Shown here piece after piece: positions 20,001 through 44,000 of a stretch of 64,000 bases of DNA. Location of the stretch: assembly GCF_964194025.1 (NCBI RefSeq), contig NC_134481.1:18848001-18912000 (forward strand), read 5' to 3'. Origin of the DNA: Convolutriloba macropyga. Lineage: Eukaryota. The notes under the pieces were generated by a model. That model had not been told where the DNA came from and ran no database searches. It saw only the letters and a list, made by a program, of their open reading frames with translations. The stretch's first letter is position 1. Every line of letters begins with the position of its first letter. A program made the translations under genes and the position numbers.

Positions 20001-23000
20001 ATGGTGTTTGAACAAAAATTCGGTTTCTCGGTAGTGGTTTTTTGTTCACATGCGGCAATTTCACTCTGAGTTTTACTGTTTTTTCAATTTTTTGGATCGG
20101 ATTTATTTCTAAATGGTTTTCCCAATCCATACACAGCTCATTCTAGGCTTAGTTTTTTGTTTGAATTAAATTTTCATTTCTCGCTAGTGGTTTTTCTGTT
20201 CACATGCGGCATTTTGACATTGATTTTTTGTTTTTTTTTCTTATCTTTTGATCTGATTGTTTTAAAATGGTTTTCTCAATTCACTCATAGTCCATTCTAG
20301 GTCTACTTTTTTTGTTTAGTCAATGAAAATTCTTTGAATTGTACGTCAGGACTTGTCCTGCTATGTTTTTTTGTTTCGTCATCTGACGCTTTTTTCGATT
20401 TATATTTGTTCACACAGCGCAGCTGAAATCAAATTTTCTGAATGACTTCTTCCTCTCACTAACAGCATCTGCGTGCGTTACGTCATTTATCATTCTCTCC
20501 TGGTAAAAGCTTAGAGGTCATTTGCGTGATTAGATTATGATCATACCCGACTTACCTCACTCCATAAAATGACATTTGCACTTAATAACTTAAGTTTAAT
20601 TCGAATCAGTTTAAGGTTATTCAGCGGATTGAATTTTTACAAGTCGTATTATTTCTCCTCTACGTTTTTACAATTTATTTGAGCGGCGTCAATAAATTTG
20701 CGAATACAAGGGTTATATCAGTGATTTATGCCCATTGATAGAGATTTTTCCAATCATTCAGTTTGCTTGACTGTTTGTGAGAAACAATAACTTTTGAATG
20801 GTAATCATTACTTTCCATGCTAATTTTTTTCCTTTGGTTGATTTTGTTGTTGAATTTGGCAGCACCAAAAACCACTGCCATTTGCTGACAAAGACTAGAT
20901 AGCCGTCTGCTTTCAAAAACTCGTCAACATCTTATAATCTGTCATCAGTAGTGTCCATAATTTTTTTGAGTCAGTTTCCAATTTTGTACAAGATTACCCG
21001 TACCTTACCTCCAGAGTAGATCAGAGCTGGAACAGAGTAAATTCAGGAAAACTCTCAGAGCTGGATCAGAGTCTGATCAGGTCACTTTTTAGGCTTGACA
21101 GAGTAGCTCCAGAGTAGAAGTATGCGGTTACACTTGACAGAAGAACTCCCAGAGTAGCATTACTCTGGGCTATCCTTGACAGAGCTGGGCCCATAGCAGG
21201 CCTACTCTGGGACAACTCTTGACAGAGCTGGCCTACTCTGGGACAACTCTTGACAGAGCTGGCCTACTCTGGGACAAGTCTTGACAGAGCTAGCTCAGAG
21301 CGGGCCCACTCTGGGATAACTCTTGACAGAGCTGGCCCAGAGTAGGCCTACTCTGGGACAACACTTGACAGAGCTGGCTCAGAGCAGGCCTACACTGGAA
21401 CAACTCTTGACAGAGCTGGCTCAGAGCAGGCCTATTCTGGGACAACTCTTGACAGAGCTGGCTCAGAGCAGGCCTACACTGGGACAACTCTTGACAGAGC
21501 TGGCTCAGAGCAGGCATACTCTGGGACAACTCTTGACAGAGATGGCTCAGAGCAGGCCTACTCTGGGACAACTCTTGACAGAGCTGGCTCAGAGCAGGCC
21601 TACACTGGGACAACTCTTGACAGAGCTGGCTCAGAGCAGGCCTACTCTGGGACAACTCTTGACAGAGATGGCTCAGAGCAGGCCTACTCTGGGACAACTC
21701 TTGACAGAGCTGCCTCAAAACAGGCCTACTCTGGGACAATTCTTGACAGAGCAGGCCTACTCTGGGACAACTCTTGACAAAGCTGGCTTAAAGGAGGCCT
21801 ACAATGAGACTACTCTGAAGAGAAAGATCTCAGAGTACCACTACATTTCCCAGAGTAGCTACAGTTCTCTGGAGAATTTTTCTAGAACTTTATTGTGATA
21901 TAGCTTTTACAATAGTTGCAGAAAAGATAGGAATAGTTTGGAAAAGTTTTCGAAAAAAACGAAAGATATAGACTTCACATTCATCCAATATCTTTTACAG
22001 GTGAATTGGATTTTTCTTGTTCTGATGTGTTCTTTTAATTTTGCAGTCAACATTTTTGAAGTCATTTGCTTCATAAAAAGATAATGCGAGCTATTTTTAC
22101 CTAGATTTTCTCAGCTTAACAAAAAAAATGAAAGTAAAACTGCCATTGTACAAAATTATTAAATTTAGAAAAATGTTTTAACTATTCATAAAATAACGTC
22201 AGAACGCAATAAACATAATAAAATCAACAATAATGTCATCTTCATGAAATAAAATAGAACGAAAATCAATTGAAATATCAAGTTTATAACCAAACAACAT
22301 TGAGTCAAATTTGAACTATGTTTTTCACTCCATTAGAAACACATTACTATTTGTCATGAAATTCCTGTCTCGCCATTGCAGAGACAACAAGTGCTTTTGG
22401 ACGAGAATTGTTGAATGTTTTGTCAGTTTCCGTAAACACGTATAATTCTGTTTGATTGTCGAAAAAGATGTGCGCCCACATTTGAGGTAGAATTGCGTTT
22501 TAGGTAAAATTGTGACAACTTTTCTCCCAGAATGATCCCTGTGTCTCCTCCAGTGTTTCGGATTTTCAGAAAAGTTTTCAGAATAGAGAACTCTAAGGCC
22601 TTAAAGCCAGGAGAGAAAGAGACTCAAGTTCAAGTATGGATAATAGCTCTGTGGCCAAATAACCACGAGAGCCAGTTTTGATGGTGTTAGTCAAAAGCCT
22701 CAAAGCACGGAGAACTCTGCAGCCTTAAATTTAAAAAAATATATATAAAAATCTGTGGCCAAATAACCACGAGAGCCAGATTTTATGGTCTTATTTTAAA
22801 GCCTCAAAGCCCGGAGAACTCTGTAGACTTAAATTTAAAAATGAATTTCTGTGGCCAAATAACCACGAGAGTCAGCTTAGTTTTAAATGTCGCATGAAAG
22901 TAACTCTGAGGTCCTCAAACCAGGAAGGTCTCCTATTATTAACAACAGCTTTTAACACCAACTCTAATGCCGAAGAAGCAATGAGAGTCAGACCAAAACT

Positions 23001-26000
23001 TTGCTAGTGTTAAAAATAAAGAACTCTAAGGCCTTAAAGCCAGGAGAGAAAGACTCAAGTTCAGGTATGAATAATAGCTCTGTGGCCAAATAACCACAAC
23101 AGCCAGATTTTATGTTCTTATTTTAAAGCCTCAAAGCCCGGAAAACTCTGGAGACTTAAATTTAATTAAACATAAATTTCTGTGGCCAAATAACTACGAG
23201 AGTCAGCTTAGTTTTAGAGGTCGTATTGAAAGAAACTCTGAGGTCCTTAAACCAGTTAGGTCTCCGATTACCACCAACAGCTTTTAACACCAACTCTAAT
23301 GCCAAAAAAAGCAATGAGAGTCAGACGAAAATTCTACAATTGTTCAAAATAAAGAACTCTAAGGCATTAAAGCTAGGAGAGAAAGAGACTCAAGTTCAAG
23401 TATGGATAATAGCTCTGTGGCCAAATAACCACGAGAGCCAGTTTTGATGGTGTTAGTCAAAAGCCTCAAAGCCCAGAGAACTCTGCAGACTTAAATTTAA
23501 AAACTATATATAAAAATCTGTGGCCAAATAACCACGAGAGCCAGATTTTATGGTCTTATTTTAAAGCCTCAAAGCCCGGAGAACTCTGTAGACTTAAATT
23601 TAAAAATGAATTTCTGTGGCCAAATAACCACGAGAGTCAGCTTAGTTTTAAATGTCGCATGAAAGTAACTCTGAGGTCCTCAAACCAGGAAGGTCTCCTA
23701 TTATTAACAACAGCTTTTAACACCAACTCTAATGCCGAAGAAGCAATGAGAGTCAGACCAAAACTTTGCTAGTGTTAAAAATAAAGAACTCTAAGGCCTT
23801 AAAGCCAGGAGAGAAAGACTCAAGTTCAGGTATGAATAATAGCTCTGTGGCCAAATAACCACAACAGCCAGATTTTATGTTCTTATTTTAAAGCCTCAAA
23901 GCCCGGAGAACTCTGGAGACTTAAATTTAATTAAAAATAAATTTCTGTGGCCAAATAACTACGAGAGTCAGCTTAGCTTTAGAGGTCCTATTGAAAGAAA
24001 CTCTGAGGTCCTTAAACCAGTAAGGTCTCCGATTACCACCAACAGCTTTTAACACCAACTCTAATGCCAAAAAAGCAATGAGAGTCAGACGAAAACTCTA
24101 CAAGTGTTCAAAATAAAGAACTCTAAGGCATTAAAGCCAGGAGAGAAAGAGACTCAAGTTCAAGTATGGATAATAGCTCTGTGGCCAAATAACCACGAGA
24201 GCTAGTTTTGATGGTGTTAGTCAAAAGCCTCAAAGCCCGGAGAACTCTGCAGACTTAAATTTAAAAAATATATATAAAAATCTGTGGCCAAATAACCACG
24301 AGAGCCAGATTTTATGGTCTTATTTTAAAGCCTCAAAGCCCGGAGAACTCTGTAGACTTAAATTTAAAAATGAATTTCTGTGGCCAAATAACCACGAGAG
24401 TCAGCTTAGTTTTAAATGTCGCATGAAAGCAACTCTGAGGTCCTCAACCAGGAAGGTCTCCTATTATTAACAACAGCTTTTAACATCAACTCTAATGCCG
24501 AAGAAGCAATGAGAGTCAGACCAAAACTTTGCTAGTGTTAAAAATAAAGAACTCTAAGGCCTTAAAGCCAGGAGAGAAAGACTCAAGTTCAGGTATGAAT
24601 AATAGCTCTGTGGCCAAATAACCACAACAGCCAGATTTTATGTTCTTATTTTAAAGCCTCAAAGCCCGGAGAACTCTGGAGACTTAAATTTAATTAAAAA
24701 TAAATTTCTGTGGCCAAATAACTACGAGAGTCAGCTTATCTTTAGAGGTCGTATTGAAAGAAACTCTGAGGTCCTTAAACCAGTAAGGTCTCCGATTACC
24801 ACCAACAGCTTTTAACACCAACTCTAATGCCAAAAAAGCAATGAGAGTCAGACGAAAACTCTACCAGTGTTCAAAATAAAGAACTCTAAGGCATTAAAGC
24901 CAGGAGAGAAAGAGACTCAAGTTCAAGTATGGATAATAGCTCTGTGGCCAAATAACCACGAGAGCCAGTTTTGATGGTGTTAGTCAAAAGCCTCAAAGCC
25001 CGGAGAACTCTGCAGACTTAAATTTAAAAAATATATATATAAATCTGTGGCCAAATAACCACGAGAGCCAGATTTTATGGTCTTATTTTAAAGCCTCAAA
25101 GCCCGGAGAACTCTGTAGACTTAAATTTAAAAATGAATTTCTGTGGCCAAATAACCACGAGAGTCAGCTTAGTTTTAAATGTCGCATGAAAGTAACTCTG
25201 AGGTCCTTAAACCAGTAAGGTCTCCGATTACCACCAACAGCTTTTAACACCAACTTTAATGCCAAAAAAGCAATGAGAGTCAGACGAAAACTGTACAAGT
25301 GTTCAAAATAAAGAACTCTAAGGCATTAAAGCCAGGAGAGAAAGAGACTCAAATTCAGCTCTGAATAATAGCTCTGTGGCCAAATAACCACGAGAGCCAG
25401 ATTTTATGGTCTTATTTTAAAGCCTCAAAGCCCGGAGAACTCTGCAGACTTAAATTTAAATAAATATCACTTTCTGTGGCCAAATAACCACGAGAGCCAG
25501 ATTTTATGGTCTTATTTTAAAGCCTCAAAGACTGGAGAACTCTGAGACTTAAATTGAACTAAAAAAAATTTCTGTGGCCAAATAACCACGAGAGTAAGCT
25601 CAGTTTTAAATGTCGCATGAAATGAAAGCAACTCTGAGTCCCTTAAACCAGCAAGGTCTCCTATTATCAACAACAGCTTTTAACACCAACTCTAATGCCA
25701 AAGAAGCAATGAGACTCCTACGAAAACTTTGCTAGTGTTAAAAATAAAGAACTCTAAGGCCTTAAAGCCAGGAGAGAAAGGGACTCAAGTTCAGGTATGA
25801 ATAATACCTCTGTGGCCAAATAACCACGAGAGCCATATTTTAGAGTCTTATTTCAAAGCCCGGAGAACTCTGGAGACTTAAATTTAACTAAAAGTAAATT
25901 TCTGTGGCCAAATAACCACGAGAGTCAGCTTAGCGTTAAAGGTCGTATTGAAGGCAACTCTGAGGTCTCCAATTACTAACAACAGCTTTTAACACCAACT

Positions 26001-29000
26001 CTAATGCCAAAAAAGCAATGAGAGTGAGGCGAAAACTCTACAAGTGTTCAAAATAAAGAACTCTAAGGCCTTAAAGCCAGGAGAGAAAATGACACAAGTT
26101 CAGCTCTGAATCATAGCTCTGTGGCCAAATAACCACGAGAGCCAGATTTTATGGTCCTATTTTAAAGCCTCAAAGCCCAGAGAACTCTGCAGACTTAAAT
26201 TTAACTAAAAAAATTTCTGTGGCCAAATAGCCACGAGAGTCAGCTTAGCTTTGAAGGTCGTATTGAAAGCAACTCTGAAGTCCTTAAACCAGTAAGGTCG
26301 CCTATTACCACCAACAGCTTTTAACACCAACTCTAATGCCAAAAAAGCAATGAGAGTCAGACGAAAACTCTACCAGTGTTCAAAATAAAGAACTCTAAGG
26401 CATTAAAGCCAGGAGAGAAAGAGACTCAAGTTCAAGTATGGATAATAGCTCTGTGGCCAAATAGCCACGAGAGCCAGTTTTGATGGTGTTAGTCAAAAGC
26501 CTCAAAGCCCGGAGAACTCTGCAGACTTAAATTTAAAAAATATATATATAAATCTGTGGCCAAATAACCACGAGAGCCAGATTTTATGGTCTTATTTTAA
26601 AGCCTCAAAGCCCGGAGAACTCTGTAGACTTAAATTTAAAAATGAATTTCTGTGGCCAAATAACCACGAGAGTCAGCTTAGTTTTAAATGTCGCATGAAA
26701 GTAACTCTGAGGTCCTTAAACCAGTAAGGTCTCCGATTACCACCAACAGCTTTTAACACCAACTTTAATGCCAAAAAAGCAATGAGAGTCAGACGAAAAC
26801 TGTACAAGTGTTCAAAATAAAGAACTCTAAGGCATTAAAGCCAGGAGAGAAAGAGACTCAAATTCAGCTCTGAATAATAGCTCTGTGGCCAAATAACCAC
26901 GAGAGCCAGATTTTATGGTCTTATTTTAAAGCCTCAAAGCCCGGAGAACTCTGCAGACTTAAATTTAAATAAATATCACTTTCTGTGGCCAAATAACCAC
27001 GAGAGCCAGATTTTATGGTCTTATTTTAAAGCCTCAAAGACTGGAGAACTCTGAGACTTAAATTGAACTAAAAAAAATTTCTGTGGCCAAATAACCACGA
27101 GAGTAAGCTCAGTTTTAAATGTCGCATGAAATGAAAGCAACTCTGAGTCCCTTAAACCAGCAAGGTCTCCTATTATCAACAACAGCTTTTAACACCAACT
27201 CTAATGCCAAAGAAGCAATGAGACTCCTACGAAAACTTTGCTAGTGTTAAAAATAAAGAACTCTAAGGCCTTAAAGCCAGGAGAGAAAGGGACTCAAGTT
27301 CAGGTATGAATAATACCTCTGTGGCCAAATAACCACGAGAGCCATATTTTAGAGTCTTATTTCAAAGCCCGGAGAACTCTGGAGACTTAAATTTAACTAA
27401 AAGTAAATTTCTGTGGCCAAATAACCACGAGAGTCAGCTTAGCGTTAAAGGTCGTATTGAAGGCAACTCTGAGGTCTCCAATTACTAACAACAGCTTTTA
27501 ACACCAACTCTAATGCCAAAAAAGCAATGAGAGTGAGGCGAAAACTCTACAAGTGTTCAAAATAAAGAACTCTAAGGCCTTAAAGCCAGGAGAGAAAATG
27601 ACACAAGTTCAGCTCTGAATCATAGCTCTGTGGCCAAATAACCACGAGAGCCAGATTTTATGGTCCTATTTTAAAGCCTCAAAGCCCAGAGAACTCTGCA
27701 GACTTAAATTTAACTAAAAAAATTTCTGTGGCCAAATAGCCACGAGAGTCAGCTTAGCTTTGAAGGTCGTATTGAAAGCAACTCTGAAGTCCTTAAACCA
27801 GTAAGGTCGCCTATTATTAACAACAGCTTTTAACACCAACTATAATGCCGAAGAAGCAATGAGAGTCAGACGAAAACTTTGTAGTGTTAAAAATAAAGAA
27901 CTCCAAGGCCTTAAAGCCAGGAGAGAAAGAGACTCAAGTTCAGCTCTGAATAATAGCTCTGTGGCCAGATAACCACGAGAGCCAGTTTTGATGGTCTTAG
28001 TCAAAAGCCTCAAAGCCCGGAGAACTCTGGAGACCTAAATGTAACTAAAAATAAATTTCTGTGGCCAATTGATAGTCAGACCAAAACTTTCCTGGTGATC
28101 AACATTGGGAATTTTAAGGCTTCAAAGCCAGGAGAGCTATGGTGACTGAGTCCGGGGTTTGGATAACAACTCTGTGGCCAAATAAAGGCAAGAAACAAAT
28201 TTGAAAGTCTAGGGTTTTAAAAACAAGAGAATTCTAGGTTTATATTTTTATCAAATAGCAAAAACCTCAATTGAAGTACAAAATAGTGAATTATTCAATT
28301 GAATTGTCTCAAGTTTAAAAAATCATTACAAAATAACAGAATTGGAAACTGGAAAACAACTTTAAACGTTTAAGCTTGGTTGGTCAGTTTTTGATTTTCA
28401 AGAGTGATCAAAGGAAGTGCACAGTTTTATGGCAAGCGAATCATCTGAGTTTTGCATCTTGACACGAAAAACTTTTTGAAGGCTGCTAGCACTAACAAGA
28501 TTTTCGGTCTTCGTATTCTGCAAACGATACAGAATACCTTTGACGGGACCAATTTCCTCAACAATTTTATGCATTTCGATGACTGCGTTGGTCCTCAATA
28601 TGAACGGCTCCTCTGGTAAGGAAACGAAGTACATAATTTGCCCGAATTTCACTTCACCTTCGACGGAAAAAGACACAAAACTGTTACAATCACCAGACAT
28701 TGGTGCGCGAGAGTAGCATGGAGAATCAAAATAGACGTTATTCACTTTCTGTCTATTGAAAAATGTGGCGTCAAAATAGAGATCTCGGCCTTGCTTTAGA
28801 GACACTGTCTCCTTCATAGCATGATGATAACTTGAATCATCTTCAATATCTTGTCCCATTAGGTTGAGCCAATGATTCTTAAGAAAATCGTTTTTTAATT
28901 TTGTGTCATATAGCCAATGGATTTGTAATAGTCTACGGCATATTATTTCAACTTCATGATGAGAACCAGAAAAATTTTCGCCCAGTACTCTATTAGCGGA

Positions 29001-32000
29001 CTCAAAACTCATTGCTGAGCAAGTAAAGAGTGGACCAAACCTTTTAACTTGGTGGCTGAGATGGCGAAGACAATGAGTGTTGATTGTTTCAATTTTTTCG
29101 TTTCCTCCGAAAAAGTTTACGATTTTTCTACAGAAACAATCCAGAAGTTTTTCAGCCTGTTCAACATTTGCACTTTCACTGGACTCGAGAAGAAGTCTCA
29201 CGCCAAAGACAAAATTAAGCAACTCTTCGTAAATGTTTGGCGAAAGTAACTCATAGAAAAGAACAGGTGCTATATAGAACATCCAGTTAAAAAATTCATT
29301 GGCTTTGAATTGCCCCATTTCCTCTAAACATCGAATTTTCCGCGAATAAGCAATCATCTCTCTCGGACACGCTAATTGCTTCACTGATTCATTTAGAGAA
29401 ATACGTGAAGAAAAATCAAGTAAAGTACGAACACGCTTTAGTATCTCCGGGAAAACTCCAAGTAGCACGCAGTGCATGTAGTCAATGGGAGCCGCCAAGG
29501 GTAAGCCTTCTATTATCAGCGAAAAGGCACTTCGTCCTTTCACTCCCACAACATTGGCCACTGTATCTTTACCAAACGACTCAGCGTATTTCACATAATT
29601 GTCGTGGATGTTAGGTTCGCGTATTTTCCCTTCCTGAAGATACGGATAATACGCATGAGTACGACCAATAGTAACACCTTCTGCTTCACAGTAATGGCAC
29701 CCAAAAAAACCATTGAATTTAAACATGTTGAGAATGTGACCTTTGGCACATAAATCAGCAATGAGAAGTATACATTTGAACTTCACAAAAATCGAGGTCT
29801 TATTGCAAACGGGAACTTCAACTTCCGAGACCAACTCTCCGCGCAACAGGGGAACGATTAGATCCCAATCGGGGGTTTCGGCACCAACATGTAAAGCTGC
29901 TAAGACAATATTTTTGCGAGCTGTTCGAAGAATAGGAGGAAGATCAACAATTTGCATCCAAATTGGCCAAAGCTCTTTCTTGAAAGATGATTTTTTAATA
30001 TTTACACCATCAGTAGATAGAATCAAACTTAATTGGACTGAATTGTTTCTAATTTTTGGTATTGGAGCTGTATTTGAATTTAAATCGCTTTCTGGATATC
30101 GTTCTCTGTAGGAGGCATAGTTGAAAATTTGGTCAAAATTCCTGCATACGATATCACCAAGTTGGAAGCGAAAATTCAATACACAGAAACAACTATTCTC
30201 AACTTTTATCAAAGCCCTCACGGAAGACTCAAAGTTTGACTTCATCTTTTTAATGAAAGATGAACCACAGGGTAAACAGTTATCACTCGGAAGTAGGGCT
30301 TTCACTGTAGAAAAAACTAGCGTAGAACCTTCGTCAGACAAATGTAGTTTAGAACACAGCATTTCAAGCAGTTTACATGCATCAGAAACTTCAACAACAC
30401 TGCCAGCAAAAAGTTTTTCACTAATAGCATCTTCTTCATTGTTTATTAATGACATACTGTCTTGAGCGCAAATTGAAGATACTGAGCAGTCAAGTACACA
30501 GGGGAATTTAGCACAAGGAGAAGACACTCGCGGTACCTCTAAAATGAAGCTGCGAGAATCATCACTCAACAATGCGCATTGTTCTACATTCTGAATTGGG
30601 GCAACGAAACTGTCAACATTTGTTTCAAGAACTTCAACAAAAGGGTCTGCAAAAGTTGCATCATCAGTTTTGTCACCTGCAATTTCCGTTGAATCAAAAT
30701 CTGTAAAACTTATGGGAGCAAGAATTTTAGGTTTGGCATATAAATCGTTACTGAGTCTCACAAGATGATTTCGACGGAACCTCTGTTTTTTCCGCTTCGG
30801 TTGTGCACATAGCTCATTACTTTCAATCAGAGCTTTTAAGCAAAATTCCTCTATAATAATTGTCAAAAGTTCTGAGAAAATCAAATTTGCATTTTCCGTA
30901 ATTATTTCGCAAGTTGCACAACGACATTGATTTTGTTCAAAGAAGTCGGTGCCGTACTTCACTAAAATTTCCTGCCCACAAAAAATGCGTTGCTTTGTTT
31001 TCAGTTGCACGATACCAGTTATACTGGAAAAGTCGTAGTCGCAATTTGGCGAACAGTCCGAATTCACAAATCTTATAGGCCCAACAAGTAATAAGTTTTC
31101 TCCGGTTCTTTCCGACCGCATAACTGACCAGTCTGTGACACCATCTGGAATTGGTCTCACAAAACCAATTGGTTTGCCGCGAAGAACAGTGTTGACAGCT
31201 AGAGCCTCTTGTCCGCAATACATTAAACGATACCCATTATACTTATCGTAAGCGATGTGAAAATCAGGTTCCAACGACCCATACGCATGGCAAAGTTTTT
31301 CATAAGTGTCCTTCCAAACATTTTCGGTTGATATTCTCTTATTGAAAATTCGCTCAGACAAAGGCCTAACTAATTCTTCAGCTGATCTGAATTTTGTTTC
31401 AACGTATCGTTTTACCGCAAACAAATCGCATTGTGCCAAAATTGGCCAGTCAACTTTCTTTGACAGCATATCTTAAAAAAATTTTAAAATGATGACTCTC
31501 TCAGACCAATGTAAAATTCAATGTCAAGAAATAATAGTTTTTTTTATGAACAATCCTGTAAAAAATGAGAACAACAAATGAGATTGCATATGAGATCGAA
31601 ATCCCATATTGAGGCACAAATCATACGAAAGCAAAATCTTACAAAAGCAAGCGAAAACGTAATACAATTGAAAACTTACCAAAGCAACATTAACAAAGAT
31701 GTTACGACCGGCGACGTTATAGAATAAACAACGCTAGCAATAAATAACAACTATATTTAATATACAGAAGCAAACGAGACAACTAATGATATTGCACATT
31801 GGAAAGAAAGCACATGTTTAACGCAAATTAGACGAAAATTTTTCAGTTTCCATATAGAAAACGTAACAGAAAGCATTCGGAGAAACAATAACAAAGGTAA
31901 TATGTCTTTAAATTTCCACAAAACTTGTTAGGGCCGGCGACGTTATAGTATAAACAACGCTAGCAGTAAAATACATTACTGTATTTAATACACAGAAGCA

Positions 32001-35000
32001 AACAATACAACTAATGATATAGCACATTGGGTGGAAAGCACATGTTTAACGCAAATTAGACAAAAATTACTTAGCGTCCATATAGAAAATCTAATAGAAA
32101 GCATTCGGAGAAACAATTACAAAGGTAATATGTCCATCGACTTTAAAGTTTCCACAAACCTTGTTAGGTCTGGCAACGTTACAGAATAAACAACGCTAGC
32201 AGTAAAATAAATAACTGTATTTAACACACAGAACCAAACGAGACAGCTAATGATATTGCACATTGGGTGGAAAGCACATGTTTAACGCAAATTTGACAAA
32301 ATCTATTTAGTGTCCATATAGAAAACGTAACAGAAAACTTTCAGAGCAACAATAACAAAGGTAATTTGTCCATCGACTTTAAAGTTTCCAAAAAACTTGT
32401 TAAAAAAATTTATCACATACAGAAGCAGGAGAATGAGCGCCAATACTAAACTTTTGAAAGCAAGATACAATGAGCAAGTTAGCAGAAATGGAAATCAATC
32501 ACAACAGTTTTCTTCAATTTTGACCGGAGTCGTTTCCTGCGCTTCTTCGCTCAACAGAACGCAACTCATTTCCCAGATTGTTTAGACTTGTCTTCGCCAA
32601 CTCATACATTCCCAGCCACTTATCGTCGTATTTTCGTCGGAACAAATCTAAACAATAAAAAACTAAAAATTATCAAAGACTGAAAATTACCAAAGACTAA
32701 AAAAATTACCAAAGACTGAGTGCTATGTACAGATTTACTTTTTAGCAAAAACTGAACGCGACAGGATTGAGAATTTAGGGACAAAAAAACAAGCAAAACT
32801 CAACCTTTCAAATGAGTTTTCCGAACAGGTGAAAAGTCTTCCCGTGAGTTTCCTGGCCTCGACCTTTTGGGAGACAGTAGATGCTCCATAATCTCATCTT
32901 TTGTCCAAAGCTTTTTAGTAGCATTTCGCGCCAGAGCTTGAGGCGTAGTTCCTTCAACTTTCATTAGATCTTGACCTTGACTCGGACCTTTGAGTATAAC
33001 CAACGCCTCGTCTCCCTCCTCAGGTTTTTTTGGCTCCGGCCAGAGAACTCCCATCTTTGCAATTTGGGAGCTCTGAAATTACACAAAAAAAATACAATTC
33101 TAAAGTTAGAGATCATCAAAAGCTGAGGAGATAGAAATATTGCAGAAAAAAATAGTATATCAAAGTGTAAACAAACCAAGAACTTCAGTTGATTCGAAAA
33201 CTGCTGCAACTGATTGTAATTTCGGTTCGATAAACCCTGTACACTGTTATTGAGCTCCTTGATGGTGTTATTGAGCAAGGCCAGGGTGTCATTCTGTTTT
33301 TGCGTAGCCTCTAACTGCTTTAACAAAAAGGGGTTCAGAAGACTATTGGTGTTTGACTCTTCAATTTGGTCAGGCCTGATAGTTTTACCTCTTCGAACTT
33401 TCTTAGGACCGGGAGTAGAACTGGCTCGCTTGGCCTGAGTTCCCTCAGCTGCAGCCTAAATCAACAATTGTGAAAGCAGACCTCAGAAAAGACCAGCAGA
33501 CCTCCATTTATCTTGAACAGAACTCCAAGCTTCAAATTTTTTAACAGAACTTCAACCAAAAAAAAACTAACAATCAGATAGAAATTTGAAAATAACAGAC
33601 CTCGGATTCGCCAGGTGGAATTCCACTGAAATCCAAGTTTAGCGAATCCTCCAGTATACCCATTGCTTGATCATCGTTTTCGGCCTCACCTAAGATGCGG
33701 TTGACATCATCACCATCAATTATAGGGTATTCACTCTCAGCAACAACTTGATTAGACTCTAAGAAATGCTGAGATGGAACAAAATCAAGTTTTTTGCTAA
33801 CAGTTGGGTTTCCTTGACTCAAAAGTACTTCATTAACGTTCTCATGCAAAGTTAACTCCGGGTCATCGGGAATTTCAAGAGTTGGTTCATAATCCGGATC
33901 ATTCATATTTTCTTGGATTTTGAGACACATTTTCTTTTCTGCCATTTTTACATAACCCTCGTGGCCCATTCTTTTGACCAGAGATCGCCAGATATATGTT
34001 CCGTTTTCAGGGTTCACAACATCAAGTTTCACGTCCACGTAGCTGCCTTGCTAAAGCAGAGATACACTAATTGTTAAGACCTCTATAAAAAAAGCGCTAA
34101 AAGAAGTTCTCTTAACTGGCAGGTCAATTTTAAGGGGCAACGAAAGTTCTCGGTGTCAAGGAAGGTTTATTTTCGTTTAACAATGTAGTAATGACATGAA
34201 ATCACTCAAGACAAAGATGAACTCTGTGCTGTTTAACGATGGATTGATGGAAAAACTGGTAGAAAAACTTACTTGAACTTCCAGGCGCTCAGCAAGACCT
34301 AGTTTGATACTGGTGTTCAAAGCGCGCATTGAGCCACAATGTTTATCACTGAACAAAAGAAGCCACCATCGGTTTTTGAGACTTTCATTAGCAATTTTGT
34401 TAGCAGCCTCCACTTGATCTCTATCAGCTTGTGATAGACCTTTTTTTTCACGTGTTGGTCTTTCAGGAACTACCTAAGCATTTTAAAAGTTCGAATACTA
34501 CATACTGAGGGTTGCTCTTTTGCGTAACTGTCAACAATTTTCCAATTTTATTCAGTTGATGCTAAAGAACAAACATCTCGATATGATTGAAAAAGTAAAT
34601 TTTCAAAGCCTTGAACTTACAATGTTTGGAGTAGTTGTGTTAGATTGACTGGTAACGTCTTCCAGAGGCAAAAAATTGGTTACCTCTTTCACATTCTGAA
34701 GCGTAAGTGCCCCTTTCGAGAAACTGATTACATTTTGTCCTGACTTTTTGTTCACACGGCCTGCTTTGATTGACATTTCAAAGCAAGTTTTTTAAACAGA
34801 ATTGTCTGAAAACAGGTTTGAAGTGTGACAATAGAACTTCTATTTCAAATGAAACTTCGTTACTTAAACGCTGTATATAGTTCACAAATTTCCAAAACAA
34901 TTAAAGATTTGAAAAACTCTAGGTAAGCAAAAGAACACCGATAACGAAAGAATTACCACGTGAGAAAAATTTTAAGGCAAAGCAGCCAGCCAATAGAATC

Positions 35001-38000
35001 TCATTCAAATCCTTAGGAATAAAAGCAAACAACAGTTTGAGTCCGAACTTGACTGTTGTCAAAAAACCTTTACAGCTTATAAAAAATGCTGATTTCTGTT
35101 CACGAAGTTCTTACATGAGAACAATAGAAACCAAAACATGCAAAAAAATTGCTCAAAGAAACGAAAATTTGAGTTCAATTTGTGTTCAATCAAGAATAAT
35201 TTTTTCAAATCACTACCTAATATAGCCGGCAGATAGCCGGCAAATAGCCACAAGTGATTCTCAATCACGATTGGAATTAAATGCTTAGAAAACAAAGAAA
35301 AAGTTTGATTTTAGCACAAAAATTTTTTCTAAGTGAAATTTATGTTGATGTCGTTTCGCAGTTGAACAAACTCCTCGTTCATAATGATAGGCTACAAGGT
35401 ATAGTATCAGTATCAATAAGCATTAGAGATGGAAGCTAAAGCCTATAAGAACAAAGTTCGAGCCCAAGCTTCGTCAAAAACCATTCAGTTGAAACAAGTC
35501 GAACATGAAAATCTTGGTAATTTAAGTAAAACGAAAAACCAAACCCAAACGTAAAAAATTTCAAAAAAGGAGAGCGCCTAGATAGTAGCCACTGAGAGGT
35601 TGACTGCTCTTATTTAAAAAATCAAACTGACCGAAATTGATTGAGAGCAACCATTCTAATTAAAACAAAAATCAAAATGATATATTCCAAGAACATATAA
35701 CGATTGAATTTATCATCAGCTATACAAACAATCAAACAATCAAGTAGCAATCAATGTTTGTTTTTATGCTTGTTGTAAATCAAGTTGTTAGCTATATTGA
35801 CCATAAGATTGGTAAGTTTATGATAGTTTTTGGGTTGTAGATGACATTTTTCATGTTCAGGTTCATCAAGAAAATGGCATCTCGACACAAAGCGATTGGG
35901 ATAATAATATGACTTGAAGTTTTCTCTTAGTTGTTTGTTGAAATCATTTATCTTAACAGAATTGCAATCTTTCCTCGAAAACAACGATACAATACGCAAT
36001 TGGTACGTATTTTCAAAGGGCAAGTGCTCTATCAAATCTCTATAGTATTTGAATATAACTTCATGAGTGACGTGGTTGAAATCATTGCCGCCTAACATTA
36101 TTACAATGTTTCTGAATTGAATAATTCGTGGGTAAAGCTGAATAAGATGAGCTGCTCTTCTTCCACCTTGTGATAACACCTCAATGGGCAGATTGCAAAT
36201 GTTAGCATTCTCGTTTTTTGCACCAAAAGCCCTGACCACGTTACTGTCACCCACAAAAACTACTTTCTCTATCAGTTTCAAATTTTTCACGTCATGGCTG
36301 ATGTAATACATGTAGTCCAACATTGTTTGCACTTCATCATGTCGATCATCGTCATAAAAAATGAAATCGAATCCATTCCGTTTCACAATGTATTGAGGAG
36401 TATTCATTACAGATATATATCTAAAAAAGTTTGAAAATGCATACCACCACTTTGCAGTGTAAATTGGGATATCAATAGGAATTAAATCTTGGAATCAATG
36501 GAAAAAGCAATAATAGGGAACATCGAAAATTTTACTTGGAATCAATTGTCTGCTCTTAAGAACAGCCCAAAGAAATATAGCCGACAGATTGCCGGAGTAG
36601 CTGCGAAAGAATAGACTTTCGTGCGGTATAAAAGAGAGAGAAACATATACAGATCTACATTGAAAAAAATCGACGCCGCTCGAAAAGCTGGGTAAAACAT
36701 TCAGGGATAAATTAATTGTTAAATTTCGTTTTGCAGAAACCTTTCATTGATGATCATTACTCTATGGAAAATTGTTTCAAACAAAAACTAGGCCTAAAAA
36801 AACTATGAATGGATGAAGAAACGCTTTTGGAAATCCGATCCCAAACATCGAAAAATAAGTAAAAATCAGAGTGAAATTGCAGCATGTAAACAAAAAACCA
36901 CTAAAGATAAAATGATTATGTCACTTGAATGGTATTTTTTTTATCTGCTCATGTGAACAAAGTCTTACGTTTGATATTCAAGGCTCGGAAAACAAGAAAA
37001 AAAATAATTCAAAGCTCTACAGGTTACCTAACTTAAATTACCTACCGTATTTGAAAAAATGAAACTTCGCATTTTTTACTACTATCGACGGAGCGTTGAT
37101 TGGATAAACCTCAGAAACAGCTATAGAAGCAGAACAATTATTGACGCATATTAAGTCTTTTCAAATTGAACCCCCAAAAATACAGTGACAATAAAAATTA
37201 ACAAGGAGGCTCGGTTAATGTGCGTACGCACATAATGTTCCGAACCCGCTCATCCATTTTCTTGACTTAATTGTCTACCAAATGATGAACAGATACAAAA
37301 CTAACATTCAAATCGTTCAATAAAAAACCAATGGAATAACAGAATTATATGCTAGAGGGCCGATGAAATTTGCTTTTAATACGACTACTAGAAAAAACAA
37401 TAGAAAAATTAAATAACAAACATTAATCATAAAAAGTAACTACTTAGCATAACTACTTAAAAAATTAAATCAAATTCAAAATCGCATCAGATAAAACCAA
37501 AACAAGCAAATTTTTGTTCAAACATTATCTAGGAAATCATATATGGTCATTGTATGACTACCAAGAATTCACACAAATCATATATGACCTAGTATTATTA
37601 ACAAGAATCATATTTGACCTAGTACGAAATCAAAGAAAGTATGATCGTTGACCCGGGAAGATGCATCAAGTCTCATTTCACTGGGGACAGATAAAATTTT
37701 TATAAATCAGACTTAAAACAGACTGACGGCATGTATAAGTTTGGCTTGTTTTCTACCAAAGTTTCTACACATTTATGGTTGAATGAGGCAAAGCATTTTT
37801 CTAATTCTTAAACAATTTTTTAACACACTTTCAGTGCAGATTATTTGTGCATTATTGAATAACGCAGTTTTATAATGTCCTCTTACTGCAGAAAAACAAA
37901 AGATAGAAATTAAGTTTAAAAAAACATAGCAGGACATTTTCTGACGTACAATTCAAATAGTTTTCATTGTCTAAACAGAAAACGACTGATAACGGACTAT

Positions 38001-41000
38001 GAGTGAATTGGGAAAACCCTTTCTAAAAAAACCAGATGAAAAAAATTAAAAAGAAAAAAAATTGGCGTGAAAATGCCGCATGTGAACAAAAAACAAATAG
38101 CAAGAAATAAAAATTTGGTTCAAACAAAAAACTAGGCCTAGAATGAGCTATTAATGGATTGGGAAAACCATTTAGAAAAAATACTCGATCCAAAAAACTG
38201 AAATGTGTCAAGATCAAAGTGAAATTGCCGCATGTGAAAAAAAACTACTAGCGAGAAAACGAACTTTTGTTCAAACACCGTTTTCCAACTCTACTTGAAA
38301 TTTAGAGCGAAAAAAGTTCACGCCGCAAAACCACTCGCTTTTTCGCTCCATTTCCTGTGCCAGCGTGACCAAAACCACTTACCCATATTGACCTCAAAAA
38401 TACTGAAAATTTGTGGACAGATCTTAAAAAAATACACTGCCCCAATACAATTCAAATTCTTTGAATTGTAAAAAAAGCCAAGAGCACCGCAATATAGCTC
38501 CACTCAGCTTACAATTTTGCAGCTATAATATGAAAAAAAATCAACTAATGTTGGAACTTCTCTCGAACGACAGGCGATGCAATTTAATTGGAGGGCCGTA
38601 GCCTAGATAAGTTTTTCTTTATTGGTGTAGAAGAAATGTACCTCTAGAAGAACCAAGATCTTTACAATAATTACTGCGAACTTCTTTCGAGAGCAACTAA
38701 TTAGGATCAAGGGATCGTTTCCGTTTGTGCCCTTAGGACGTTATGCAACCCACCGTTACAGGGCACGTGTTATTACATAGACAAAGATAATGTAAGAGAA
38801 TGCTATGTGTGTTTAGGGGGTGCAAAAAGTTGCACCCATTGAACGGGGGCACAAATGGAAAAGATCCCATTCAAGTCATTTTGTTAAATGAAAATAAAAT
38901 TGAAGCACCAAAAGTAAAAACGATTATATTAAACTAAACTACTTGAGGTTTAAGCACTACTTGGCATCATGATCCCGATGCTCCTTCTTGATTTATTAAT
39001 TAAGAAATCCAACTTCGCCCTTCTGAGAACTCAATTTCTTCATTTTGGATTGCATGCAACTATTGGATTGAAATGAAGAATTATATCGTAAGAATAAAAC
39101 AATCTTGCTTCTCTTGATCTTTCTTTCCTTCTTCCAATTCAGTTCTGTTAATCTTCAATTCCTTTTGCTTCTCCTAATTCGCTGACATCTGTTCCTACGA
39201 AAACTGTAATGACTTTATCGTTCCATCGTAATTTCTGATTTGCTTAGTGAGGTTGCAGTATACGCACGTGCCCCTCTCCCAGTATGGCATGTTGATCCTC
39301 ACTTAGAACTCCCAGATAGTCCAGTTATCAATCTGTCTTGTCTCCAGAAACAAAACACCTATCGAAAGCAAGATGAAAGCAAATACAAAAGAACAAAATA
39401 ATCGATAAATATCAACATCGCACATATAACATAACCGAATTACGTCGGGCGAATTGCTCTCAAACGACCAGTTGGCTATGTCAGTAACTAGCCACGGTTC
39501 AGTGAGGCTAGCTTTACTTTAATTGAAGGGGCGTGAGGTGAGCGCATCGGGGGGATAGTGCACCGGGGGGGGGGGGGGTGGTGCACCAGGGGGGGGGGGG
39601 GGGGTTGTGGGTGGGGGCTTGGGGTGGGGAGTGGCAACGGTGAGAGGGGGTCCTTTGGCCGCACCGGGCCCTTGCAGCCTGAATGATGCGCAGGGTTCAG
39701 GATTTGTGTGGGGGGAGTGAGGGGGGCTGATGTTGGGGGGGGGGGGGTTGTTGTGGGTGGGTCGACCTCTAATAACCGCCTTACACATCATGAGTATCAG
39801 TCTCCAAAACAGTTTCTGTGAATCGCATACTTCGAGACTAGTGGACTGAAAGACTCTAGGAGAACTTAATGTCTACCGAGTGCTGCCTGTTCATCCCATT
39901 TTTGAGAATAAAAATTCAAATGGGTCAGACGAAAAATTGGTCAAGCAAAAACTCAAAGTAAAAAAGACCTACATGACTAATATAATTGCTACAAACTTCG
40001 TTTAAGAGCAATTAACAATCATAAAAGCCAAACAATATCATAATCAAATTTCTAAACCAAAAAAAATATGAGAAAACAGTTTCGAAAAAGCCGCACCTGA
40101 ACAAAAAATTTCGCTCGTTTACAGAAAGCTCGTTTTTCCACACAATTTTTCGCTCTCTCGAAAAGTAGTTATGAATAAATTTTGCATCTGACAAGCAGAT
40201 CAATTGAACAATAGCAGCCGAAAACGCAAACAGTCATAAAATTGGGGAAACTAGACACACTTAAAAAATAGCAAGAGTTGTAAATTGGGGAAGCTAAAAT
40301 ATTTTTAGCAGAATGAGAGAAGAGCAAAACTAGCCTAAAGTAAAAATGATTTCACGCAGATTAACTAGCTGAAAGGCCCTAAGAGATCTTAATGCCCGCG
40401 CAGCGCTTTCTGTTAATCCTGTTTTTTTCAGGACCAAAAGTCAAATGGGTCAGACAAGAATTCGGTGAAGCAAAAGATCGCATTCAAAAGAACAACAGGA
40501 CTAATGTAATTGCGGAAAATTTTGTTTGAGAGCAATTAATGAAAAATAGCCGGCAGATTGCCGGAAAATACTCGCCGTTGACGCGCTTGATGCACACCGG
40601 GATTGAAACAGAAAAAAAAGAAAAGATGAATTGACCGAAATTTTTTTCAATTTTTTTAGTGTTAAAAAGTGTTCTAATTCGACCTGCAGTTTCAGTTGGA
40701 TTCTAAAACTATACTTAATTCAGCTTCTAAACTGAAAGCTTAATAAAGTTAATACCAATGTCAGCTAGCAAACACTCTAATGAACTTTGATAACTTAATT
40801 GGCAATGACTTAACGACCGGGCTCAATTGGTTTATCCCGTCTCTTTTTATTTCGCTCTTTTGACCTTGACTGTATCTACTATCTTGCGTTTTTCATTGAG
40901 TGAATCGATTTAAAAACCATTCCGTTGAAACAGTGAGTGAGGTAAGTCAGTAGTCAAACGTAAAAGTTGTGACTTTTGTAAAACGAGAAACGTGATCAAA

Positions 41001-44000
41001 AAGGTAAAGCGAATTAAAAAGCATAGTAGGACAGTTCCTGACGTACAATTCAAAGAATTTTCATTGATTAAACAAAAACTAGATCGAGAACGGACAATGA
41101 GTTAAATTGAGAAAATCATTTCTAAAAAATCAGATCGATAAAACAGCCAAGCGTGAAAAAGTCACTTGAGAGCCACGGAGGTTAGAAAACAAAAACTCAA
41201 ATACATCCGACTACCATTGGGTGAAATGCTCTCAAAGGACTGGCAAGCAAACGGCTTTGGTAGTAGCCAGTTGGGGCTTAGGGATGCCAGCATTAATGAG
41301 GGGGATTGGATTGGGGGGGGGGGGGTCAAGCGATGGGTTTAGGGTCGTGAGGGCTGAATGAGATTGGGGTGCAAATAGCAAGGTAGAAAGGATAAACGGG
41401 GTGGTGTTCACAAGGGGAGGGGGTTGCTGATTGCTTTCTTTTCAAGATTAAGAACTCCCCTTCACACAGTGAATTTATCTCCTCGAAACGGTTTTGGTGA
41501 TCGCATACTTGTCAAGTAAATTTTCGCATCAAGACCACACGACTACAATAAATGCATCAAACTTCTGCTGGTCAAAGATGGAATATAATTGCATGGTGTA
41601 AAAAGTCGGCGAAAATTTATGAAATGCAGAGGAATGTACAGTTCAACTTACTGATTGGATCGAGTTGTTGGGTAATGTCTTGCTCTTTAGTGATCCGTAT
41701 AATGTCTGAGTTTGGGGATTTACACTCGCTTGGCTTCTCGTCAAGTGTAATTTGACCGACATCTTTAGTGTTCATTTCGCAAATGCAGTCTTCTACCGAG
41801 AGCTCTTCTCCACAGAAATCTGAATAAATTAACGCTTGCTTTACAACCAACAATTTTGTAAACTGTTCCATTATTTATTTTTTAAAAAAGACCAGGAGAA
41901 TGTTTGCCGAAAATAAAAAGTCGAGATTAATAGAGCTTCAGTTTTAGTCGTATTATTAAAACGGCTGTCAGTTTTTAAACAGATCCGGCAGATTGCCGGA
42001 CAAAAGACTCGACAGACGCTTGTGGCTTTTCATGGAATTGAATCAACCAAAGAAATAAGATAGACAGATTGACTACCAGTCTTTTAATAGACCATTAGAC
42101 TTTTTTGTTAGATTTGGACTGTCCTCTTTATGAGACGCAAACGCTCTATAAGGAAAAACCCTAATAGCGCTTTTTCAACATTATAATTCCAAATCAAAGC
42201 TTAAGACTCAAATACACAAGAGTTAGGGCATATACATTTGGCTCAACTTAGATGCACTCTATTGATCTTTAACTTTTAAATGTATAAACATAGCCGGCAG
42301 ATTGCCGGAATAGCTGCGAAATATTAGACCTGCGTGCCATATAATAGAGATAGAAACAGATACAGATCTAAATTGAAAAAATCGACGCCGCTCAAAAAAC
42401 TAGGTAAAAAAATTTAGCGATAAATTAATAAAGCTTGTTAAAATTCATTCCGCAGAAGCTTCTTATTAAGGACCTTTACTGCACATATGAGTTCCTTTGA
42501 CCTTAAACAAATTCAAATTAAACTTAAGTTTTAAAGTGCAAAAGTCATTTTATTGAGTGAGGTAAGTCACTTGTGATCAAAATCTAATCACGCAAAAAAC
42601 TTTTGCTAAAGAGAGTGAGAAATGACGTCACGCGCGCAAAAGCCGTTAGTGTGAGGAAGAAGTCATTCAGAAAATTTGACTTTTTCAGCTTTGCTGTGTG
42701 AACAAATGTAAAACGAAAAAAGAGCGTCAGACGACGAAACAAAAAAAAACAAGAGCACCGCAATATAGCTACGCTCCGCTTACAGCTTCGCAGCTATAAA
42801 AAAACTAACGGAGTTCAGAACTCATTTTTTGAGTGAGGTAAGTCAATCAACTGTCCGATAAGCACAACATATTACGTCATGCACACAAACTTTAACTGAA
42901 AAACAGCAGCAGTCTCTGAAATTTAAAAACTCAATGGTCGAAAGAATCATCGATGGAGACGACGAATTAAATAAAAACCATGATGTCCCCAATAATAACC
43001 GCTATTGCGTCGCTGCTATTGAAAAGCCAAGAGCACCGCAATTTAGCTCCGCTCAGTTTACAGCTTTTCAGCTATAGAACAATTTCTCATCAGACTTATA
43101 TCAAAATAGAGTCCTATTTTTAGTAGATACAGATACTCCGTGATATCATTTTAAATCGCTTTTTTACTAACCAGGAGAACCTAAAACCAGCACAGCAGTT
43201 CATCATAAAAACTCTCTTTTTCCCTCCGGCGAAATATGGCCTTAACTTGTGGAGGGGCAGAATAGGGTCTCTTCTGCCCCCCCCCCCCCCAGAAACTTAA
43301 CGGGAAAAAACTTTTACGCGCCAGGCGCAGGTGCTATTTTTTACATGGTAACGTGCTATATAACAACACATTAATTGTAATGGGGGACATTAAAACACTG
43401 TGGGGAGGCGGAATAGACCTCAACTTATCACTTCGCGGCCTTTAACAACTACAAAAATAAGATAGACAGATTGACCACCGGTCCTTGAAAAGACCACGAG
43501 TTTTTGGGTTAGATTCGGACTGTCATTTTCATGAGACACATACGCTCTGAAATAGAGCTTTTTTAAAATTAATATTTGAAATCAAAAACTCAAGACTCTA
43601 ATACTCAAGAAATAGGAAATATACATTTGGCACTACTTAGATGCACACCATTAATCTTTAGCTAGTAAAATTTCATAAAAGTAAGATTCAATAAGTGAGT
43701 TCAGAAAACATTTTTTTGAGTTTGGCAATTGACGCAACTGACCTAAAAGCAGAACAAATAACGTCACGCACACCAATTTTGACTGCAAAGCAGTAGACTT
43801 CACTGAAATTGAAGAAAAAATCATTGGTCGCAAGAATCAACGATGGAGACGACGAATTAAAAAAACACGATGTCCCCACTAATAGCCCCTATTGCTCCGC
43901 GGCTATCAAAAAATAACCAAGTTGTAAACGATATACTCATTTGAATTACGCAAATTAGATCGCTTTTTTTGACACCCCATTTGAACTGATTCAATCGTTT

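Follow-up and report, generated by a model that had tools for sequence, protein, structure and literature searches.

A candidate multi-gene DNA transposon of the CMC superfamily with a SET-fused transposase, a BEN-like gene, an SGNH hydrolase gene, and motif arrays in the acoel Convolutriloba macropyga

The insertion and its three genes

The window analysed here is a stretch of 64,000 nucleotides of AT-rich, animal-type DNA from the acoel Convolutriloba macropyga (contig NC_134481.1, positions 18,848,001 to 18,912,000 of the forward strand). It holds what is best explained as a large DNA transposon, in which a transposase with a SET domain is accompanied by a BEN-like gene, an SGNH hydrolase gene, and a kilobase tandem array (Table 1). 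Terminal inverted repeats (TIRs) and flanking target-site duplications (TSDs) delimit positions 20997-54814 as one cut-and-paste insertion of 33.8 kb. Inward from the left end, a 42-bp array and a 5.6-kb array are followed by the transposase, the BEN-like gene, and the SGNH gene, all on the minus strand. An initial annotation of this DNA had described three intact, co-oriented genes and a 5.6-kb array inside the left TIR. All four components lie at the places it gave and its start coincides with the left TIR, but the extent it proposed (20997-36407, 15.4 kb) is too short, as the whole element measures 33.8 kb and runs to 54814.

For comparison, loci (designated by L numbers) were fetched around six relatives of the transposase, three of the SGNH hydrolase, and two of the BEN-like protein. 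One of them, L001, is a sister copy that is 96% identical to the window element and 12.5 kb long, with the order TIR, subterminal repeats, about 1 kb, SGNH gene, BEN-like gene, transposase, array of about 1 kb, 42-bp array, and TIR. The terminal sequence from 20997 reads CCCGTACCTTACCTCCAGAGTAG..., and the TIR is 48 nt long. Identical ends are flanked by TA/TA in the window but by TG/TG in L001, which shows that the 2-bp target duplication is real. Because the sister copy lacks the DNA at 36717-54427, this part of the window element is regarded as extra and as lying outside the gene module. A run of N (54183-54427) directly borders the right end, where the scaffold and the matching TSD are the grounds for assuming continuity. 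When the 12-nt terminus was searched in the other fetched loci, ends were found in L001 and L003 only. L003 belongs to another assembly, and its end, which shares the last 12 nt with the window terminus, follows a transposase and a 5.6-kb array of its own; since that array lies between the transposase and the window-like terminus, it is internal to the element.

Table 1. Coordinates of the features of the element, in positions of the window (AF2, AlphaFold2; ORF, open reading frame; TRF, Tandem Repeats Finder; aa, amino acids)
Feature	Position	Strand	Evidence
Left target-site duplication, TA, 2 bp	20995..20996		TA at both element ends
Left terminal inverted repeat, starts CCCGTACCTTAC	20997..21044	+	90% complementary over 50 nt to 54766-54814
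Left subterminal array, 42-bp unit, ~15 copies	21161..21787		TRF; related repeats inside right end
Internal tandem array, ~100-bp units in 332/432-bp higher-order repeats	~22580..28190	-	TRF, motif copies
SET + DUF1258/Tnp2 transposase, 1023 aa, intact ORF	28398..31469	-	Pfam, 64 homologs, structure-sequence matches
236-bp x 3 tandem repeat, between BEN-like gene and transposase	31700..32402		TRF
Six-exon gene, predicted coiled coil + C-terminal BEN fold, 495 codons without stop	32517..34776	-	Splice model, homology, AF2/Foldseek, atlas
SGNH/GDSL hydrolase, 218 aa, intact ORF, conserved ~45-aa N-terminal extension	35751..36407	-	Catalytic blocks, AF2 + Foldseek, Pfam of homolog
Extra DNA: dispersed repeat fragments, unique sequence, ALDH pseudogene, two N runs	36717..54427		Comparison with L001, repeat map
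Right subterminal repeat region	54428..54765		97% identity to L001 3607-3993 (match includes TIR); repeats related to left 42-mers
Right terminal inverted repeat	54766..54814	-	Inverted partner of left TIR
Right target-site duplication, TA, 2 bp	54815..54816		Matches left TA

In the transposase, Pfam places a SET domain at residues 120-173 (25.3 bits, cut-off 22.4) and a DUF1258 domain at residues 473-599 (49.9 bits, cut-off 33.1). Transposase_21 scores 23.7 bits, under its cut-off of 28.6, and the DUF1258/Transposase_21 region together covers residues 471-601. The majority of the 64 transposase relatives, which are mostly 44-57% identical, carry both SET and DUF1258. A catalytic DDE triad is presumably present, as suggested by the profile match and the long intact ORFs. 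The ten best sequence matches of the SET domain among solved structures are SUV420H1 (KMT5B) and SUV420H2, with E values of about 1e-9, and the alignment extends over the C-terminal, catalytic portion and the post-SET segment with its CxCxxC. By sequence, the domain is closest to SUV4-20/KMT5 and possesses the post-SET cysteines, in line with the Suv4-20 enzymes to which the initial annotation referred. The cofactor-binding motif reads NSDCxPN in the window versus NHDC in SUV420H2 and departs from the canonical NHxC. Among the 65 sequences scanned, 35 homologs keep this motif, as NSDC in 33 and as NSNC and NSSC in the other two. The GxE..VKYG..FF motif is also conserved in the family, and because both motifs are kept, the domain is considered a conserved variant and not a decaying one.

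The second gene was modelled with six GT-AG exons (34776-34621, 34473-34273, 34050-33601, 33455-33177, 33072-32805, and 32647-32517), which were set by pyrimidine-rich AG acceptors, frame-compatible GT donors, and the ends of homology; listing the splice sites blindly gave no useful information. Across the exon 5/6 junction, the model aligns with an intronless homolog of 228 amino acids (P0084; 55% identity over the C-terminal domain), which was found with an exon-5 profile in a library of 1.8 billion proteins. The AF2 model of P0084 has a mean predicted local distance difference test score (pLDDT) of 81.7, and most ten-residue blocks in the C-terminal domain score 92-97. When it was compared by Foldseek with the PDB, the top 13 matches were all BEN domains, DNA-bound or free (BEND6, Insensitive, BANP, Bsg25A/Elba1, and NACC1), with template modelling (TM) scores by target of 0.50-0.66, probabilities up to 1.0, and E values of 0.02-2. 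Among the Swiss-Prot models, the top 17 matches were likewise all BEN proteins, of which Elba2 and BEND5 match over the full length (coiled coil and C-terminal BEN domain). In a language-model atlas, exon 5 falls among BEN clusters carrying PF10523 (score 0.94). An all-helical BEN fold with an N-terminal coiled coil is accepted as the predicted architecture, which bears out the BEN-like assignment of the initial annotation at the level of the modelled fold, whereas sequence profiles do not place the protein in the family. Three long candidate homologs (P0092, P0119, and P0123) proved to be bacterial surface proteins matched via a low-complexity stretch and were discarded.

The locus of P0084 itself (L011:10001-10687) carries a solitary, intact, intronless BEN homolog with no transposase or SGNH gene within 10 kb, which could have arisen by domestication or as a retrocopy. 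Downstream of it, gene calls indicate an apparent tandem of short ORFs with a period of about 3.6 kb (14425-20539), where TRF listed no array; some of these ORFs have weak matches to CENP-F_leu_zip or Monjiviricetes_fusion. DUF4806 is also among the atlas matches of exon 5. Region 2 of zebrafish chromosome 4 contains multi-copy genes with SET domains and DUF4806, the latter being a BEN subtype (PMC11075544).

The third gene, called an SGNH hydrolase in the initial annotation, has both the fold and the catalytic blocks of that family. The blocks kept in the family alignment are FVGDSN (I), GGRRA (the Gly of II), GGND (III), and E-x-C-H (V), where Glu and not Asp stands three residues before His. 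The window protein matches PF13472 at E=0.022 only, and a homolog (L006:5503-6000) passes PF00657 with 25.1 bits (cut-off 23.6). The AF2 model of the SGNH protein (pLDDT 80, predicted TM score 0.76) gave 114 Foldseek matches with E<=1e-3, all of them SGNH hydrolases (best 8e-8); bacterial GDSL hydrolases, PAF-AH Ib alpha subunits, and sialate O-acetylesterases come closest in fold. The modelled protein is a flavodoxin-like SGNH hydrolase, whose multi-copy relatives are 39-53% identical. Residues 1-45 form a shared extension (consensus RNG..F.FYD.D...DVQTMLDYM) outside the hydrolase fold, with low model confidence and no family match.

Co-inheritance of the genes and motifs in the arrays

L003 and L012, whose transposases are 32-46% identical to that of the window, come from two other ENA assemblies (ERZ25071366 and ERZ25074608, the latter holding L012). 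BEN exons lie collinear with, co-oriented with, and upstream of the transposase in L001, L002, L003, L004/5, L006, L007, L008, L010, and L012, and the BEN-like gene precedes the transposase in 10/10 other transposase-bearing loci. Each of the three SGNH relatives used as a starting point adjoins a SET-bearing, transposase-like ORF, and an SGNH profile search found a same-strand copy in every C. macropyga lineage examined. The gene lies upstream of the BEN-like gene in the window, L001, L006, L008, and L010 (with two paralogs each in L008 and L010) and downstream of the transposase in L002, L004/5, L007, and L009. The components that the initial annotation had tied into one system do therefore recur together within this species.

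The genes have also diverged together. Identity matrices of the three genes have a common grouping, in which the window and L001 are joined by L008 and L010; L002, L004, and L007 form another group; L006 stands alone; and L003 and L012 lie outside. Pairwise identities of the transposase correlate with those of the BEN-like gene (Pearson r 0.91) and of the SGNH gene (0.87), where r is descriptive only as the pairs are non-independent. For L008 versus L010, the ratio of non-synonymous to synonymous substitution rates (dN/dS) is 0.11-0.22 for the SGNH gene and 0.12-0.19 for the BEN exons. The window and L001 give 0.23-0.39 for the transposase, 0.18-0.32 for the BEN exons, and 0.57 for the SGNH gene (14 non-synonymous and 6 synonymous changes). 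Between lineages, the proportion of differing synonymous sites is saturated at about 0.85, and that of non-synonymous sites is 0.30-0.35. Per gene, the values of 0.11-0.57 are not those of neutral evolution. Comparison of the sequences shows that the three genes were co-inherited under purifying selection through lineages whose transposases are 40-60% identical.

Kilobase tandem arrays occur inside or beside the gene set in every lineage, and their unit length (105-349 bp), sequence, and position vary. The array of the window is about 5.6 kb long versus about 1 kb in L001. A first motif of 21 bp, CTCGTGGTTATTTGGCCACAG, which reads CTCGTGG-N5-TGGCC-N-CAG on the transposase strand and has 15 specified bases, is found in 30 exact copies in the window, 6 in L001, and 9 in L008 (33 with up to two mismatches), always downstream of the transposase and on a single strand; it is absent from the rest of the roughly 300 kb of fetched sequence that was searched. 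The transposase core of L008 is 59% identical to that of the window, its array has a 105-bp unit and lies downstream of the transposase, and the consensus units of the two arrays have no 11-mer in common. A second motif, CAAGTTGCTGGACTTGG, is present in 23, 41, and 93 copies in the arrays of L002, L004, and L007, which lie between the BEN-like gene and the transposase and are built from units of 291, 157, and 130 bp with nothing else in common. Both motifs have short inverted arms (GTGG..CCAC around TGGCCA, and CAAGT..ACTTG). They are thus lineage-group-specific, 17-21 bp long, and partly palindromic, and they are kept while the remainder of the unit is unalignable. Because a short motif is retained while its surroundings are replaced, the motifs are candidate protein-binding sites, and their conservation suggests such a role; being conserved between diverged lineages, they fit the proposal in the initial annotation of an element that recognises repeats of its own.

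The hexamers ACTCTG and AACTCT are enriched 30-60 times in the 42-bp subterminal array and strongly in the internal array too. As a link between the two arrays this was rejected, since one common 6-mer between 100-bp and 42-bp units is about what chance gives.

Some other loci and stretches deserve a separate mention. A 1350-amino-acid ORF in L009 (5829-10696) has a strong SET match (47.6 bits), a C2H2 finger, and a weak DUF1258 match, and it is immediately followed by an SGNH gene (P0073). This locus, in which the BEN exons were not detected, is a more distant architecture on the same theme. In L012, an ORF with an HD domain (3038-3598) lies 6.4 kb upstream of the pair of BEN-like gene and SET-transposase. 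ORFs of 650-800 amino acids that looked like a fourth gene (L002:3238-5244, L006:2643-5045, and L008:6413-8359) are translated (CATA)n, (ATGTATGT)n, and (TAT)n microsatellites, and kilobase microsatellites accumulate in these elements alongside the satellites. L013, fetched via the SGNH protein of the window, was discarded as an independent copy because it is the window locus itself (99.995% identity over 25751-46408 to a contig of ENA assembly ERZ25071359).

Within the window element, the 236-bp repeat between the BEN-like gene and the transposase is present in L001 too. A 253-bp stretch between the SGNH and BEN-like genes (35045-35297) is absent from L001 and from the contigs of all four public runs that contain this DNA (joint 35044->35298) and is an indel polymorphism among family copies. 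Just beyond the SGNH gene, positions 36468-36648 reach a summed contig word depth of about 50,000 in these runs, compared with 150-300 for the neighbouring genes, which marks a very high-copy short repeat. In the extra DNA, the repeat fragments have further copies beyond the element and at other loci, and about 6 kb are unique and GC-richer. The latter contain an intronless copy of an ALDH1/2-type aldehyde dehydrogenase (ALDH; 50981-52390, minus strand), which also has matches in the PDB and in which the Pfam domain Aldedh is matched at positions 69-461 across three overlapping frames. Its reading frame identifies it as a frameshifted pseudogene, which could be an inserted retrocopy or a captured fragment.

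Superfamily placement and relation to known systems

The transposase core (DUF1258, with Transposase_21 below its cut-off), the TIRs, the subterminal repeats, and a target duplication of 2 bp (2-3 bp in the superfamily) place the element, as far as its sequence tells, in the CMC (CACTA/Mirage/Chapaev) superfamily, nearer to Mirage than to CACTA. Mirage elements produce 2-bp target duplications. Strict membership of CACTA (En/Spm) was ruled out, as the termini are CCCGTACC and not CACTA and the duplication measures 2 bp and not 3 bp; for the same reasons, the element is described as CMC/Mirage-like and not as CACTA in the strict sense. It resembles En/Spm and Mirage/Chapaev in the DUF1258/Transposase_21 core, in TIRs with subterminal repeat arrays, and in its large size, it has the 2-bp duplication in common with Mirage, and, like En/Spm with its TnpA, it encodes a second protein beside the transposase. 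It differs from the known CMC elements by its CCCGTACC termini, the N-terminal SET domain of the transposase, the third (SGNH) gene, and kilobase internal arrays with a conserved motif of their own, and from En/Spm by an accessory protein that has a predicted BEN fold and is not homologous to TnpA.

A SET domain and a transposase also share one polypeptide in SETMAR (Metnase), an immobile host gene of primates with a captured mariner transposase. Here, the fusion would serve a mobile, multi-copy element as its functional transposase, and both the SET subfamily and the transposase superfamily are different. Coiled-coil BEN proteins such as Insensitive, Elba1/2, BEND5, and BEND6 bind DNA as dimers, at short sites that are often palindromic. 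The BEN-like protein resembles them in predicted architecture (N-terminal coiled coil) and fold, but the sequence similarity is too low for Pfam to detect, a transposon and not the host carries the gene, and DNA binding by its product is a prediction.

SET genes have been found in other DNA transposons, namely in HarbingerS and MuDR elements of Phytophthora (Kojima and Jurka 2014, cited in PMC12730594) and in a proto-Helentron, where the gene is of the Clr4/SU(VAR)3-9 type (PMC4067079). The common feature is a gene resembling SET histone methyltransferases within a DNA transposon, whereas those elements belong to other superfamilies, reside in oomycete hosts, and carry SET as a separate gene, in contrast to the in-frame, SUV4-20-like fusion described here; a BEN or SGNH partner is not reported for them. 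Fungal transposons of the KDZ, Plavaka, and EnSpm (CMC) types encode TET/JBP dioxygenases, and plant VANDAL elements encode VANC, which acts through sequence-specific binding to the repeats of its own element and has a demonstrated epigenetic effect (PMC12730594). They are alike in that a DNA transposon keeps a gene with a domain related to epigenetic marks, whose action on such a mark is putative in the present case; the enzyme class and the mark (DNA methylation there) are different, and the accessory proteins are not homologous.

SGNH esterases occur in ORF1p of CR1/L2-type elements lacking long terminal repeats (LTRs) (PMC3905857), as extra ORFs of bdelloid LTR elements (PMC5408684), and as a gene captured by a Helitron (PMC4021074). 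In all these cases, as here, an SGNH hydrolase with intact catalytic residues is carried by a mobile element. Unlike in the retroelements, the gene described here is free-standing in a DNA transposon, and the comparison is one of fold and catalytic blocks, not of sequence kinship. SET genes in oomycete transposons and SGNH genes in retroelements were therefore known before, whereas the combination of a BEN-like protein, a SET-transposase, an SGNH hydrolase, and motif arrays in an animal transposon appears to be new. The initial annotation had named it a candidate new system, and no description of a SET-fused CMC transposase with these partners was found in the searchable full-text literature, which does not cover Repbase Reports and subscription journals.

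Interpretation and significance

Taken as a whole, the observations are best explained if the window copy is an intact, recently mobile multi-gene DNA transposon of the CMC superfamily, a reading to which we assign a probability of about 0.6. The DDE core would cut and paste the element. The BEN-like protein, dimerised via its coiled coil, would be the sequence-specific DNA-binding accessory factor of the element and would recognise the array motifs, the subterminal repeats, or both, thereby marking the element's DNA and helping to assemble or regulate the transposition complex. By analogy, its role could parallel that of TnpA in En/Spm or of the Myb-like protein in Harbinger, DNA-binding accessory factors that recognise repeated motifs. 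The SET domain may confer an activity or a contact of the SUV4-20 type on chromatin, be it binding of the histone H4 tail, its methylation, or methylation of another protein, and the SGNH hydrolase is predicted to be a catalytically competent accessory esterase comparable to those of retroelements.

Several findings weigh against this reading. Catalysis by the SET domain is uncertain because NSDC replaces the NHDC of active SUV4-20 enzymes. The BEN assignment derives from the model of a homolog that is 55% identical, with Foldseek E values of only 0.02-2; Pfam BEN (PF10523) matched neither the single exons (E<=1) nor ten homologs (E<=0.01), and the exon-5 profile found no match among the sequences of solved structures in the PDB, BEN structures included. 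The position of the SGNH gene varies between lineage groups, and in the most distant lineages, L003 and L012, the SGNH profile found no copy within 10 kb. In other assemblies, the co-occurrence proposed by the initial annotation thus extends to the BEN-like gene, the transposase, and the arrays but not to the SGNH gene, so the conserved core consists of the former three. The dN/dS values come from small counts and, being drawn from transposon copies, combine phases under selection with neutral ones. In the four public runs that contain the stretch, the contigs run through the introns, show no GT-AG joints, and behave like genomic DNA. As regards the arrays, near-identical copies show a five-fold difference in array length, and the motifs co-vary equally with each of the three proteins. 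The array motif is not found in the subterminal repeats, and the two kinds of repeat have only a hexamer in common, about as expected by chance.

The most far-reaching alternative, close to what the initial annotation had proposed, is a full chromatin module, in which the BEN-like protein on the arrays recruits the SET-transposase and H4K20-type methylation over the element or its targets controls silencing, target choice, or repair, with the SGNH hydrolase in the same pathway. A SUV4-20-like SET domain conserved in all lineages, a predicted BEN fold with a coiled coil as in the insulator and repressor proteins Elba, Insensitive, and BEND5/6, the conserved array motifs, and precedents for transposon-borne epigenetic modifiers (PMC12730594) speak in its favour. 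Against these stand the change from NH to NS in the cofactor-binding motif and an SGNH hydrolase that has no known chromatin role and was not found in the two most distant lineages; moreover, both the physical link between BEN-like protein and SET domain and the histone marks are putative. The module is compatible with the data, but we consider it doubtful in this full form. Turning to the arrays, they could instead be selfish or neutral satellites that expanded by slippage or unequal exchange in a large and tolerant element, the motifs being kept by descent and homogenisation. The five-fold difference in length between 96%-identical copies would be expected from such a process, as would the differences in unit length, sequence, and position between lineages and the microsatellites that expand inside these elements too. 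It accounts less well for arrays in every lineage examined, and for two lineage groups that each keep a motif of 17-21 bp at the same place and in the same orientation despite unalignable units and saturated synonymous sites, which makes this explanation rather improbable.

That the BEN-like and SGNH genes are passengers of no use to the element, either captured host genes or nested insertions, has some general plausibility, as CMC and other DNA transposons capture host fragments, the window copy itself holds an ALDH pseudogene, and L011 has an intronless BEN homolog that stands alone, with no transposase nearby. The two genes are, however, collinear and co-oriented with the transposase and co-diverge with it across lineages that are 40-60% diverged, their dN/dS lies well below 1, and in the 12.5-kb copy they are situated within the TIRs, where no room is left for nested elements. 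As the genes co-occur, co-diverge, and are constrained, and as the 96%-identical copy holds the same set, the passenger reading is rejected as extremely improbable, in agreement with the initial annotation, which had treated the genes as parts of one element.

Returning to the multi-gene transposon, animal DNA transposons have mostly been described as carrying a single gene, whereas this family keeps three genes and motif arrays over deep divergence, and two of its three proteins have domains typical of chromatin regulators, one of them by model. With a SET domain that has a family-wide NS variant, a BEN-like protein, and a 21-bp candidate site present 30 times per copy, the element offers a tractable case for how a DNA transposon deals with the chromatin of its host. 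A further, quite unlikely idea is that the element builds its own chromatin domain, in which BEN dimers would coat the motif arrays and the SET domain or SET-transposase would read or write an H4K20-type mark, thereby setting silencing, insulation, or excision competence. If true, such a self-built domain would correspond in an animal to what VANC or TnpA does, with the difference that a histone-directed enzyme is built in. The family also bears on the possible origin of host BEN and SET genes, on satellite-like arrays spread by transposons, and on the repeated recruitment of SGNH esterases by mobile elements.

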